Of a DNA stretch of 64,000 nt, positions 23,807 through 41,129 are shown one piece after another. The notes under the pieces were generated by a model. The model ran no database searches. It saw only the letters and a program-made list of their open reading frames with translations, and had not been told where the DNA came from. How positions within the stretch are numbered: position 1 is the stretch's first letter; each line of letters opens with the position of its first letter. The DNA comes from Macrostomum lignano. Lineage: Eukaryota. The DNA lies in assembly GCA_002269645.1 (NCBI GenBank), contig NIVC01003518.1:1-64000 (forward strand), written 5' to 3'. The position numbers and the translations under genes are program-made.

Positions 23807-25300
23807 CCTGAGTATTAGAACTTAGCATTAGATCTGCAAAGCTGCTGTAAAAGGGCGCCAAATGAGCTGGCAAGAGGTGCCACTGTTTGCCATCCTACGG
23901 AGTGGGGGCAGCCCCTTACTTTCCTTAAGCTTCATAATTACATCTATGCATAAGCGCCAGCTTCATGCACATCCTATTATTTGTCTTTTACGGCTGCCTT
24001 TCAGTGCACAGTTCAGGAAGATATTCAATGCCTGACGGTTCAGCTGGCAAACGGAGTGGCTGAGGCCTTAGATTATCTGCAGAGCATGCAGCATTCGGCT
24101 GACGAAGGCTGGGATGGAGAAGTCACTACGGACGCTGTACTTATTGACGAGCATCTGAATGCAAAGGTAAGGCGCAGTGCTCACGATTCACACACTAAAA
24201 TCGCTTGTCAAGACATTGAAACTGACATCGTGTGACTCCCGATCAATGGTAATTTTTCAGGTTTCACTCGCAACGGATTCACTAAAAGCTACGGGATTTC
24301 AAGATCGAACAGCTTCTAAAGAACATTGTCGAGACTCTTTCCGGCAGCGAAATCAGCTTAGGGGAATATTTTATAAGTATACCATCTTTGTTTTGGAACT
24401 TTTCTCTAAAATCTTATTAAAGAAAACAGTAATGCCAGAGAGCTTCGAACAGCTGCTAAAATTGCGGACGCGTCCGAAACGATTTATTAATCATCTGGAA
24501 GAACTCTGGAGTGAAGCGCGAACTAAGGGCCGCAGAGACAGTACAAATCTGACTCGACTTAAGTCAACGATTGTTCAAGTTGCAAGCATCTCCTTGTCCG
24601 AGAAGGAAGCAACCATGGCCGAAGTGAGTCAGCTTTGGAAACGCAGCGGCTTATTAAAGCAAGCACTGATTGATCGAGAACTTGTACTTCAAGTACTCCA
24701 AGGTACAATGGATAAAAGCGTTGACTTGTGGTCTGGAGATTCGGCAGCTGGCACTCTTATGGACAAGAAAACACGGAGCTTTACTGAAACTGGAAAACCA
24801 ACAGAGGAAGCATGTAAAATGGAGATTTTTTCAACTGCTACAACATCAACTAAGACAAGCAGAGTTACCGTCACGAATCTCCCTGATAACCGACAGTTTT
24901 TCAGCGGTACGTCAAAGTCAAAGACGTTTTTTGTCTTGTCTAAAAGTACGCTTATGACGTGTGCTGCGCCACGAAAAAAGAATGGTTTGAGACAGCTGTT
25001 TTCCAAGATGTTCTTATCTATTTTAGCTAATCAGTTGCGTAATGCAGTCGGTAAGATTTAAAATAAAAAGGATTTAAAGTAATAGCGACATCTGTCCAAT
25101 AGACATTACCAATAGGTAATTTCCAAACATTTGTTTTAATTTCATCAAGCTATCAAAACTCTGTTCTAATATAAATTAGCAGCAAAATTTGGTTCTTCAG
25201 AGCTTGGCTTCAGCGGGAGCCCAGGTGGCCTGAAGATCAGCATCTCGTCGATAGCCAGTGACCTCTCGACTGCAGTAGTCAGACAGACTATTCCCGCTAT

Positions 25301-26372
25301 TGAAGTATAGGTGTCTTGCCTGTGGTTGTCTAGAGGCCTTCAATAGGAACGCTGCCCCGGTGAAGTACAGTTGCTTGAGCTCCTCTGGGAAGTCTCCGGG
25401 TTGATCTAGTAGCGTTGGTAGTGCTGCCACCAGCTTCGCAGAGTCGCAGCCTTCGGTGAGGTGCTGAGCTCGTAGAAGCAAATAACTAAGACGAGAGAAA
25501 GAGACTCGCACTTCGTGCAGATTTAGCAGTTCTCGCGCAGAGGTGCCCACCGTCAGCAGTCCCTGCCGGGCTGGTGCGGGGTGAGAGCGAAAGTGCTAGC
25601 TTCGGGCGATCCGAGCTGGCCTGCTAATTGATAGCAGGAACAATCAGAGGCAGTCACGCGCAAAGTCGGGAGTTTGGAGTTCACTTGAAGCGCAGACTTG
25701 GCACACAACTTAGAGTTCGCTAGAAACGAAACGGAAGGAACGCTAGGAAAGCTTGGAAAGCTAGGAACGCGAGGAACGGTAGGAACGCTTGTCTGAGCCA
25801 AGCCATGAGAGGGGCCGCATTTATAGGGAGGATCGATTGCACCATAGCACGAAAGGCCCCCGCTGAGAGTCATAAGTGACTCTGTTGCTATTTTTAGCAA
25901 CAAACAAGCGGGCCCTGCCTCAGAGGAGGCAAGGGGGGGGGGGGTCCGGGCGCACGTGATCTCCCCATAAACACGAGCCCAGCGTACAATGATGAAATCA
26001 TTGCACTTTGGACTAAAGAAGGAAGAGGGCCTTGTCATGTGACTGACTCACATGACAAGGGGAAACGGCCCACAAGTGAAGGCACTCGTGACCGTGGGAC
26101 CGGAAAACAGAAAGGCACTCCAAATTTGGAGATGCCTGACAGAGAACGAAACAGAGGCAGGCCAGACCAAGCTGTCTGGGCACTGCAAAAGGGAAAACGA
26201 GACAAAAGGGGGCAAACGAGGACAAACAGACAGACAGACAAACGAGCAGAGGACAGGCCAGGGGACAGGCGGGGGGAACAGGCAACTGCCCAGCGGCAGA
26301 CAGAAACCTGGGGAGAAGGCGAGGGCAACAGCTGACTAGTGCGGCGCCTAACTAAACTAGCGACTCACTACA
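25301..26372 (-). repeat. 3' LTR (1072 bp)
   Basis: By eye, near-identical to 34344-35368 + 40757-40800; the differences I could see are in G-run lengths. TATAAAT on minus at 25819-25825. Confidence 0.95.
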
Positions 26373-26385
26373 CTCTCCCCGTTCA
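26373..26385 (-). other. Polypurine tract
   Basis: Minus strand GAACGGGGAGAG abuts the TG of the 3' LTR. Confidence 0.85.
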
Positions 26386-26865
26386 AATAAAGAGGCGGAG
26401 TGAAGCGGCGCGCGCTTTATTTAAAATCAAATGCAGGTTTAATGCAAACGGCAAATAAAAAGGAACGGAAGTTGAGTCCTAACATAAAATGCTGTTATGT
26501 AATTGCTTGGCTGGGCAGGCCACAGAGTTCTCGCCCGATACTGCAGGGGCACCGGCCTGCTATCAGAAAGGCGCCTAAATACCGGTGTGGGCGCCAATCC
26601 ACTAAACAAAGGCGCTCTACGTTCCTGAGCTAGCTCCTCACCCAGAGCGAGCCGCTGGTGGCTCAAAGGCCGCGTCCTGAATAGAATAACTACCGGCCTA
26701 AAACACCTTAAAGGGGCCAATTCGCACAAACCTAGGTGCTGGAGAACACCAACATCGCGGCATCAACAAACAACACAAAAAAAGGGGAACTGCGGGCACC
26801 GGTCCCTAGGATAAATAGTGGGCCGGCTAAGGCAGAGTCGAGATCAAGCGTGTCTCCCTTTCCGT

Positions 26866-39800: not shown

Positions 39801-40658
39801 GCGGGTATTGCCATTTTCCACGAGGGTAAGATGCTTCTCCAGGAAAGTCTGCACCTCGGTGAGAACACCTCAGTTTTCCAAGCTGAAATTTGCGCCATTG
39901 AGCAGTGTGCCCAGCAACTGTTTCAGGCGAACATTAATAATTTTGACATTAATTTCTACACTGATAGCCAAGCTGCTATTAAGGCCTTAACCACTGAGAA
40001 TATCTCCGCTGCTACAGTATCTCAATGCCACCGCAGTGTGCAATCTCTCTCAGTCCTTAACAGGATTAGAATTATCTGGACACCTGGTCACAGCAACATC
40101 CTGGGCAACGAGCTCGCGGACTCTCTCGCCAAGGAGGGCAGCAACCCAGACGGCAACCACCGTCTGATGAGGCTACCCACCCCCAGGTCGCAAGTCACCC
40201 GCCATATCAACAGGTGGCTCCATCAGCAGCACCAGCTCCACTGGAACAGCTGCACCGAGTACAGGCAGAGCCGCTCTGCCATGCCTAACCTGAACAGGAA
40301 AGTCTCTGATTATCTGATTTCGCTTAACAGAACCGACCTCAGGGAGATGTGCATGGTCCTAACCGGCCACGGATTCTTCCAGAGACATATATCGTTGCAA
40401 ACCGGTTGCCCTCCCACCTGTCCCTTCTGTGGCATAGGAGAGGAGACCGCGGAGCATCACGTCACCTTCTGCCCTTACTTCAACAAGGCGCGGCACAAAT
40501 ACCTCGGCCACCCCCAGCGGATGGACGAGCTGACCACCGCGGACAATATCCGAGACCTCCGCGCCTTCGTCCGGGACTCCGGCCGGATGAGGGTCGCCGA
40601 TGCCTCCACTGCGGACCTGCCGACTACTGGCGGGGACTGGGCGCACCCCCAAGGCTAA
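36841..40658 (+). CDS. LINE ORF2: endonuclease-RT-RNase H-CCHC finger, one 1-bp frameshift in a C run at ~37285-37290
   Basis: IQINLHH, IQEP, CDANAH, IDLTL, SDH; GPD, FRPISL, QGGVL, YADD, YLGV; FTDGS, AEI, TDSQA, WTPGH; [14 protein letters not shown]. Confidence 0.92.
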
Positions 40659-40802
40659 TCCTTGTGCTCTTTTACCTTGGGGGTTGCGATAGGGGCCTCG
40701 CGGCCTATTCGCGGCGCCTGCGCCCCCCGTCAGTAGTAGTAGTAAGGCGAGGGCAACAGCTGACTAGTGCGGCGCCTAACTAAACTAGCGACTCACTACA
40801 CT

Positions 40803-41129
40803 ATGCTAGGCGATGAAGTTGACCTGCTAACTAGAAGCTACTCAAGTGCGACAGTCAACCACGAGCTCATCAAACGACTGTGCAACTGCTCTGAAGTTGT
40901 TGACCGACTGAAACTGATTCTACTTGAGATGGATAGCTTAATGACGGTCAGACATCATTTTGGAATCGACTCGAGTAACCAAGCTATCTCTGGTGGACAA
41001 GCCGAAACAATTCTAAGAAATTTGCGTGAAAGAGAGCTCTTATCGGCAAGAGATCTCGGATCGGCCTTTAAAAAGTGCGGCTGCTTAAATGGTCTACGAA
41101 TTCTGCGAGATTTTGAGACGAGTAATTAA
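40803..41129 (+). CDS. Stand-alone death-domain ORF (108 aa), distal half of gene C last exon
   Basis: MLGDEVDLLTRSY..LIKRLC..LRERELLSARDLGSAFKKCGCLNGLRILRDF aligns along its length with the gene B death domain; the ATG overlaps the CTAT TSD. Confidence 0.75.
   Translation: MLGDEVDLLTRSYSSATVNHELIKRLCNCSEVVDRLKLILLEMDSLMTVRHHFGIDSSNQAISGGQAETILRNLRERELLSARDLGSAFKKCGCLNGLRILRDFETSN

Follow-up and report, generated by a model that had tools for sequence, protein, structure and literature searches.

We find that the last coding exon of a gene in Macrostomum lignano is split by a retrotransposon, and we consider the locus to be, most probably, an ordinary and recent insertional gene truncation in which the 108-amino-acid open reading frame (ORF) left downstream of the insert is a by-product rather than a new gene. 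The window analysed is the stretch from position 1 to 64,000 (64,000 nucleotides) of contig NIVC01003518.1. Within it, a Ty3/gypsy LTR retrotransposon with TG..CA ends occupies 25301..40800 on the minus strand (15,500 bp including a nested LINE), and a 4-bp target-site duplication, CTAT on the plus strand, is present at 25297-25300 and 40801-40804, directly flanking the TG (25301) and the CA (40800). Excision of 25301-40804 yields a single open frame (..QTIPA-M-LGDEVDLL..); in the filled allele the upstream frame reads ..QTIPAIEV and then meets a TAG at 25308-25310, inside the LTR. A preliminary description of this DNA had reported the CTAT duplication, the TAG, an ATG at 40803, the 108-codon ORF and the open frame obtained by removing 25301-40804, all of which we confirmed, and the TG..CA ends, the CTAT flanks and the restored, in-phase frame bear out its view that the last coding exon has been split by an inserted retrotransposon.

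The gypsy element, all features of which lie on the minus strand, has a 3′ LTR of 1,072 bp (25301..26372) adjoined by a polypurine tract (26373-26380; reverse complement GGGGAGAG), and a coding region (26866..34209) that encodes gag (34209-33040, with a weak CCHC match), a protease-like segment (33208-32645), reverse transcriptase (RT), RNase H and an integrase zinc finger (32708-29163), and the integrase core, which continues in another frame (29337-26866). Pfam matches along pol are RVT_1 (3e-32), RT_RNaseH (1e-35), Integrase_H2C2 (9e-16) and then rve, so that the order of domains (RT, RNase H, integrase) is the one Ty3/gypsy requires. A primer-binding site complementary to a tRNA 3′ end (34319..34342; TGGTGACTCAGCGG.. 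in element sense, starting TGG) lies 1 nt from the 5′ LTR, whose inner 1,025 bp (34344..35368) extend as far as the LINE and whose outer 57 bp (40744..40800) include the right copy of the LINE target duplication. Without the LINE and the second duplication copy, the 5′ LTR consists of 34344-35368 plus 40757-40800, and the whole element, minus the LINE and one duplication copy, measures 10,112 bp. Comparison of the two LTRs indicated no substitutions and two length differences, both in G-runs. A canonical heat-shock element was absent from the gypsy LTR. We note that AATAAA occurs inside the insert at 26386 and 26454, among several poly(A) signals.

The nested LINE (35369..40743, plus strand; 5,375 bp) sits 44-57 bp inside the outer end of the gypsy 5′ LTR. 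It contains ORF1 (35573-36841) and ORF2 (36826-40658), the latter encoding an endonuclease, RT and RNase H (Exo_endo_phos_2, 1.8e-22; RVT_1, 5.7e-30; RNase_H, 9.7e-13), and ends in an (AGT)4 tail (40732-40743). Its target duplication, AAGGCGAGGGCAA (11-13 bp), is found at 35356-35368 and 40744-40756, and the undisturbed LTR contains a single copy of it (26316). The insert had been considered as a single retrotransposon with a LINE tail, a possibility we rejected, the tail being that of the LINE nested in the gypsy LTR. Because the LINE lies in the U3 of the 5′ LTR, a position that is not copyable during retrotransposition, it must have arrived after the gypsy element, and because the LTRs carry no substitutions both insertions are very recent. 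We found no additional copy of either element in the window.

Neither element has intact coding capacity in the present assembly: gypsy gag-pol is interrupted where the integrase core is split over two frames (near 29164-29190), and LINE ORF2 is frameshifted at a C-run (37282-37293). These frameshifts fall at or near homopolymers and may have been introduced by the PacBio assembly instead of being genuine defects. That the whole insert arose in assembly, or that the PacBio assembly misjoined a state specific to one haplotype or copy, we regard as extremely improbable: the assembly is repeat-rich and redundant, and the homopolymer-length differences suggest leftover PacBio errors, but the exact 4-bp duplication at the LTR termini and the second exact duplication around the LINE are signatures of real integration.

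With the insert removed, the host gene can be modelled on the plus strand as six exons (20665-41129) whose splice sites are canonical throughout and whose frame is open over 494 codons. Exon 1 (20665..20731), which was located with a UniProt model from another M. lignano copy (P0004), begins MNSKSVKSLYVKRSKNTSMLGK with the start ATG and has a GT donor; exon 2 (20799..20838) has a GC donor (AG|GCAAGT); exon 3 (20988..21132) carries ..VVAIK.. and an alpha-C-like region; exon 4 (24005..24166) carries a degenerate catalytic loop; and exon 5 (24261..24906) encodes a linker and the remnant of a kinase C-lobe from which DFG is deleted. A strong internal donor in exon 5 (24623|24624) is used in UniProt models of other copies. 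The last exon is in two parts, 25201..25300, which ends with the left CTAT copy, and 40805-41129, which encodes a death-domain-like module and ends with a TAA (41127-41129). An AATAAA at 41307..41312 (plus strand), 178 nt past this stop, is likely the original poly(A) signal of the host gene. GenBank carries no annotation for the upstream part of the gene. Intron 3 contains a 15-bp satellite in 172 copies (21160..23739, no strand assigned); more generally, a small lineage-specific cluster of kinase-plus-death-domain-like genes is found here, with minisatellites packing their introns. Neither tRNA genes nor matches to Rfam families were found in the window.

A paralogue encoded in the same window, P0003 (minus strand, 14433-2216), provides an 'empty-site' comparator, as its last exon (2216..2650, minus strand), which encodes the linker and death-domain-like module and ends in a TGA stop, is uninterrupted. 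BLASTP aligned the restored host protein with P0003 in one collinear alignment (query 69-491, P0003 498-898; E=2e-18) that runs across the insertion point. We consider the split-exon pattern to be beyond chance because the 4-bp repeat abuts precisely the TG..CA termini of a 1,072-bp LTR pair, because the restored frame is in phase and completes the six-exon model, and because the restored protein is collinear across the junction with P0003, whose last exon is contiguous.

P0003 matches the Pfam kinase families at 1e-36 to 1e-39, whereas a Pfam scan of the spliced 458-amino-acid host product detected no family at E<=10, the protein kinase families PF00069 and PF07714 included. Relative to P0003, the HRD..N motif of the host copy has become DGE..A (paralogue ILHRDLAVDN aligns to WDGEVTTDA in exon 4), DFG is deleted, and the beta4-beta5/hinge segment is missing; because of these changes the host kinase-like part is, as judged from its sequence, a pseudokinase or a kinase remnant. 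The term pseudokinase used in the preliminary description is thus apt, given that the host copy shows collinear homology with a true kinase encoded nearby and has lost HRD and DFG. Relatives of the gene came from a full HMMER scan, which placed the family in M. lignano only, and three word-indexed homologue searches gave no useful match. UniProt models from other M. lignano copies are 98% (P0001) and about 95% (P0004) identical to the host gene, so that at least three near-identical copies exist, counting the split one. No recorded locus corresponds as such to P0001 or P0003, the latter being encoded in the window itself.

The assignment of the C-terminal module, which had been called a death domain, is more tentative. 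Pfam Death (PF00531) gave no match in the C-terminal domain of the host copy, and the homologous domain of P0003 matched it at E=0.0026 over profile positions 9-84 of 86, with a score (18.3 bits) below the 22.6-bit cut-off. Comparison with validated death domains by hhalign gave scores of 18.0-18.3 (P=0.011, probability 3.8%) that none of 200 column shuffles reached, and with -mact 0.1 the death-domain alignment was collinear (query 21-96, template 4-77). A death effector domain (DED) was rejected in place of a death domain (DD), as the hhalign score was lower and the alignment off register. Searches of PDB sequences returned as their sole match the c-FLIP DED, at a non-significant E=1.5; AlphaFold2 run on a two-sequence alignment gave six helices in an unreliable model (mean pLDDT 45), and Foldseek with this low-confidence model (pLDDT 45) matched nothing meaningful. 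The sub-threshold match of the paralogue and the hhalign result weakly support a divergent, death-domain-like module that falls short of the Pfam threshold.

We propose that before the insertion the gene would have encoded a kinase-like region that was catalytically dead and in part deleted and, C-terminal to it, a divergent death-domain-like module. The gypsy element would have integrated antisense to this lineage-specific gene, in its last coding exon, making the CTAT duplication, and the LINE would next have entered the gypsy 5′ LTR in the orientation of the host gene, with its own 11-13-bp duplication. As a likely outcome, the upstream frame would stop three codons into the LTR and the protein would lack the C-terminal module. 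Read from the filled allele, this upstream product is 389 amino acids long (386 host residues plus IEV, encoded by three TE-derived codons), in agreement with the earlier statement that the upstream part is truncated. The 3′ exon fragment would retain Met387 and stay open as an ORF of 108 codons (40803..41129, plus strand), which GenBank annotates as a single-exon gene. Its start codon (40803-40805) consists of the AT of the right CTAT copy and the G at 40805, and this triplet is the Met387 codon. The ATG at 40803 is therefore a pre-existing in-frame methionine codon that was preserved by the duplication, and the claim that the insertion regenerates an ATG, correct as to the way CTAT and G compose it, overstates the case. 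The ATG lies 59 nt past the end of the LINE tail at 40743 (57 bp of gypsy LTR and 2 nt of the duplication), so the intact ORF is indeed downstream of a same-strand LINE, as had been noted. The filled allele can be recognised by a junction k-mer (LTR end plus CTATGCTAGGCGATG) and the intact exon by ATTCCCGCTATGCTAGGCGATG.

Intronisation of transposable elements is known in other organisms, and GT and AG dinucleotides lie close to both junctions, so that the transposons might be spliced out as a new intron through cryptic sites and a near-full-length kinase-like/death-domain-like protein might persist. However, a frame-keeping donor upstream of the TAG is absent, the 15.5 kb contain several poly(A) signals (e.g. 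AATAAA at 26386 and 26454), and the protein collection holds no such product. We judge this outcome very improbable. Indeed, none of ten candidate isoforms was found in the protein collection, the restored 494-amino-acid and truncated 389-amino-acid forms included.

The 108-amino-acid ORF is a GenBank CDS and is also present in nr/UniRef, and as the GenBank annotation is transcript-based there is some RNA signal over it. The preliminary description had gone further and proposed a functional gene fission, that is, a truncated pseudokinase together with a free 108-amino-acid death-domain-like protein that could act as an adaptor or dominant negative. Such a protein would putatively come from LINE read-through transcripts, with translation re-initiating at the ATG that first follows ORF2 or with a spliced leader added in trans near 40787. 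Several features are consistent with this notion: the ORF is intact and the gene features in a transcript-based annotation, the LINE and the ORF share a strand, the ATG at 40803 is the first past the ORF2 stop, an AATAAA lies past the ORF at 41307, and trans-splicing affects 38.8% of M. lignano genes while polycistronic precursors make up ~7% of transcripts (PMC5730564). The GenBank CDS is, however, no proof of expression from this locus, because the annotation pipeline accepted RNA-Seq reads with as many as 1000 mapping positions, and because at least two further copies are 95-98% identical, so that coverage of the 3′ exon can stem from other copies. Moreover, no promoter for the ORF is evident, a pyrimidine-rich stretch is absent upstream of the candidate AG acceptors, the ATG-start ORF is recorded from no other contig, the GTG-start ORF that spans the junction is not on record, and selection has not had time to act on so young an insertion. 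Of two further routes that had been suggested, an antisense LTR promoter is unlikely, since the LTR sequence next to the ORF amounts to just 57 bp and the gypsy element is oriented away from the ORF, and 3′ transduction finds no counterpart in the window, which holds neither another LINE copy nor an extra death-domain-like exon. We therefore consider a true gene fission unlikely. A related proposal, that the nested insertion made an operon-like two-cistron unit in which transcripts started in the host gene or the LINE reach the old poly(A) site and a free death-fold protein arises by re-initiation or trans-splicing, strikes us as decidedly unlikely; if it were true, the unit would be a very young TE-driven gene fission in a trans-splicing animal.

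Insertional truncation, the reading we favour, accords with the genome in which it is found. LTR elements make up 21% of the M. lignano genome, in which duplicated blocks of at least 95% identity total 180 Mb (PMC5730564); the elements are transcriptionally active, and the Ty3/gypsy superfamily (Ty3/Mdg4) accounts for their majority (PMC12801592). The insertion is tolerated, we infer, probably because it struck an already degenerate gene that belongs to a set of at least three near-identical copies, in a genome rich in TEs and partly duplicated. The consequences are mainly for annotation: the 108-amino-acid GenBank gene very probably corresponds to an orphaned fragment, the 3′ end of an exon that transposons have split. 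The locus also offers a clean, datable case in M. lignano of two retrotransposons that inserted one after the other, both very recently, and would serve as a convenient insertion-polymorphism marker for comparing the DV1 and NL10 lines. Were the 3′ ORF expressed from the locus, it would be a rare instance of gene fission caught at its very start.

With gene fission the locus shares the conversion of one ancestral ORF into two separate ORFs, but fission is defined by the independent expression of both halves, and the event here is too recent for a test by selection. The geometry of a same-strand element directly upstream of a host ORF is that of L1-type 3′ transduction; unlike in that system, no transduced copy is seen in the window and ORF2 is frameshifted in the present assembly. 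In RIPK1-type proteins the kinase is N-terminal and the DD C-terminal, whereas in IRAK/Pelle-type proteins the DD is N-terminal; the host protein shares with RIPK1 the order of a kinase-like region and then a C-terminal death-domain-like module. The likeness to RIPK1 is one of domain order; the host protein lacks HRD, DFG and the beta4-beta5/hinge segment, and its DD assignment is sub-threshold. As with DD-only and truncated regulators, loss of the module or its expression alone can in principle give dominant-negative forms. The nested element resembles I/R1/LOA-like RNase H LINEs with an AP-endonuclease in its endonuclease, RT and RNase H, its target duplication of variable length and its short simple-repeat tail. 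The closest parallels are insertional disruptions by Ty3/gypsy elements, with which the locus shares TG..CA LTRs, a 4-bp duplication, a primer-binding site, a polypurine tract, the order RT/RNase H/integrase, insertion into a coding exon with a premature stop, and a second element nested in the first; the LTR here is without a heat-shock element, and nothing about the locus is unusual in kind when set against known disruptions of this type.

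A plus-strand gene of six exons (20665-41129) encodes a kinase-like region followed by a C-terminal death-domain-like module, and its last exon is interrupted by an insert at 25301-40800. The exons are connected by canonical splice sites: exon 1 (20665-20731) is followed by exon 2 (20799-20838), which uses a GC donor (AG/GCAAGT at 20838/20839) that was placed with the help of P0004, a protein model from another copy of the gene, then by exons 3 (20988-21132), 4 (24005-24166) and 5 (24261-24906) and the split last exon (25201-25300, then 40805-41129). With the insert removed the gene has an open reading frame of 494 codons, and with the insert in place its product is 389 aa. 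Searches of the spliced product against Pfam and PDB sequences gave no match. Intron 3 is filled by a 15-bp satellite (TTTAGCACCAGGGGC, 172 copies, 21160-23739), a unit that reappears ~36 kb further on (59202-59392), within a different gene region.

The insert starts with TG at 25301, ends with CA at 40800, and lies between two copies of the target-site duplication CTAT (25297-25300 and 40801-40804). Upstream of it the frame reads ..QTIPAIEV and then stops (TAG, 25308-25310), and on the 3′ side an ORF of 108 codons runs from an ATG at 40803 to 41129; excision of 25301-40804 yields a single frame (..QTIPAMLGDEVDLL..). A preliminary description of this stretch had recorded these sequence facts (the CTAT repeat, the TAG, the ATG, the 108-codon ORF and the restored frame), all of them correctly. 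Its claim that a retrotransposon insertion splits the gene holds for the CTAT-flanked insert as a whole, but two nested elements are involved, and its "regenerated" ATG was in fact never lost: the codon lies whole on the 3′ side of the insert, where the duplication (CT-AT) has kept it intact, and is the in-frame Met387 codon of the restored exon, so that nothing was created.

That the insert is a single element is ruled out by the interruption of one LTR by a separate plus-strand LINE. The outer element is a Ty3/gypsy retrotransposon, antisense to the host gene, with a 4-bp target-site duplication. One LTR of 1,072 bp occupies 25301-26372 and the second copy 34344-35368, resuming at 40757-40800; the copies show no substitutions in 1,069 bp and differ only in the lengths of two G runs. 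Between them, on the minus strand, the coding regions follow the order gag (a weak CCHC match), protease-like stretch, RT, RNase H, integrase zinc finger and integrase core, with a tRNA-3′-end-like primer-binding site 1 nt inward from the right LTR and, just inside the left one, a polypurine tract. The ORF holding the end of the integrase core (26866-29337, minus strand) has ~540 further codons, and the stretch between RNase H and the integrase zinc finger ~430 residues, with no Pfam match. No canonical heat-shock element was found in the LTR.

The LINE (35369-40743, plus strand) interrupts the gypsy 5′ LTR. It contains ORF1, then an endonuclease (Exo_endo_phos_2, 1.8e-22), RT and RNase H; its tail is (AGT)4. 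The LINE is flanked on both sides by AAGGCGAGGGCAA, a sequence with a single occurrence in the intact LTR. Each element carries one frameshift, that of the LINE at a C run (37282-37293) and that of the gypsy element in the integrase core (near 29164-29190), and both may be PacBio homopolymer errors. As is established for LTR replication, retrotransposition does not copy a LINE that lies in the U3 of a 5′ LTR; hence the gypsy element came first and the LINE second, both at this site.

When 1.84 billion representative proteins were scanned in full with HMMER, only three relatives of the host product emerged, all from M. lignano. P0002 is the 108-aa ORF itself; P0001 (158 aa, 98% identical), whose cluster includes P0004 (217 aa), is like P0004 a spliced model from another copy of the gene; and P0003 (902 aa) has strong kinase matches. 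The host model aligns with P0003 in one collinear stretch (query 69-491, subject 498-898, E=2e-18) that is continuous across the insertion point. Relative to P0003, our copy has HRD..N replaced, DFG deleted and the beta4-beta5/hinge segment absent, and its N-terminal part is therefore a dead, partly deleted kinase remnant. The P0003 gene lies in the same window (14433-2216, minus strand), and its contiguous last exon (2650-2216), which encodes the linker and C-terminal module in the layout of the split gene, served as comparator for the uninterrupted exon. This paralogue, 96-100% identical in amino acids to P0003 (UniProt A0A1I8JDI5), has three tandem kinase-like units and only one terminal death-domain-like exon; its introns (2684-9518) are full of minisatellites (units of 18, 28, 31, 16, 33 and 35 bp, ≤96% identity). 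It stands head-to-head with the split gene, ~6 kb apart, and the two thus make up a small cluster of lineage-specific kinase/death-domain-like genes in the window.

The preliminary description had called the C-terminal module a death domain. Our copy gave no Pfam Death match, but the P0003 module alone has PF00531 as its best family (E=0.0026, 18.3 bits, below the 22.6-bit cut-off; profile positions 9-84 of 86). We compared the two flatworm modules with eight death domains and four DEDs, all validated with Pfam. Against the death domains hhalign scored 18 (P=0.011), a value reached in none of 200 column shuffles, and with -mact 0.1 the alignment was collinear (query 21-96, template 4-77); the DEDs matched more weakly and off register. 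A structure model of the module (pLDDT 45) was too poor for use and its Foldseek matches were meaningless. Taken together, this weak but consistent evidence suggests that the module is probably a divergent death-fold domain, not a proven death domain.

GenBank annotates the 108-aa ORF (40803-41129) as a single-exon gene, and it is present in nr/UniRef. Its exact match puts the window at 1-64000 of NIVC01003518.1 (GCA_002269645.1), an accession of the M. lignano Mlig_3_7 genome (PMC5730564). Ten plausible upstream isoforms are all absent from the protein collection, and no model of the upstream 389-aa part was found there; the ORF occurs on no other contig, and a junction-spanning ORF is not on record. 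Functional fission of the gene, as proposed in the preliminary description, has a low probability. The ORF might be expressed from the LINE, which is on the same strand, given that its ATG is the first after the ORF2 stop and that an AATAAA follows at 41307, but the gypsy promoter is oriented away from it and just 57 bp of LTR lie between the LINE tail and the ORF. Moreover, the annotation is transcript-based with massive multi-mapping allowed (up to 1000 mappings of RNA-seq reads; PMC5730564) and copies 95-98% identical exist, so other copies can supply the RNA signal on the 3′ exon, which would then simply halt at the LTR. Immediately upstream of the ORF, the LINE tail and LTR supply in-frame stops that bar its extension into the transposons. 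The 108-aa gene without an upstream model seems to be a by-product of annotation, in which transcripts overlapping repeats were excluded. Furthermore, a strong internal donor (GAA/GTGAGT, 24623/24624) is used by P0001 and P0004, whose splicing to 24905 or 25201 shifts the frame and gives products of 158 and 217 aa (P0001 stops at 25231-25233); the death-domain-like module is consequently untranslated in such isoforms, insert or no insert. The transposon would fall in their 3′ UTR.

Elsewhere in the window, a 20-bp minisatellite (ACTCTCGCTCCCAGATC..) forms two arrays (42101-42709 and 45344-46978) with a small unit change between them; these arrays explain why GC skew is strongly negative at 42-48 kb. 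An annotated multi-exon plus-strand gene (~48200-63900; start 48199, 1,005-aa product) contains many repeated cysteine-rich units (C..C..C..DGV / CGDC..C..C..D.CN) whose three-finger/Ly6-type matches are all sub-threshold (CD59 4e-4, UPAR_LY6 0.1, Toxin_TOLIP 0.36).

We conclude that a lineage-specific gene, present in multiple copies and degenerate beforehand, has had one copy truncated by a recent, nested insertion of retrotransposons. The event is well documented, yet ordinary for the M. lignano genome, which comprises 21% LTR retrotransposons and 15% tandem repeats, has 180 Mb in duplicated blocks of at least 95% identity and trans-splices 38.8% of its genes (PMC5730564), and whose LTR elements are mostly Ty3/Mdg4, some of them strongly transcribed (PMC12801592).
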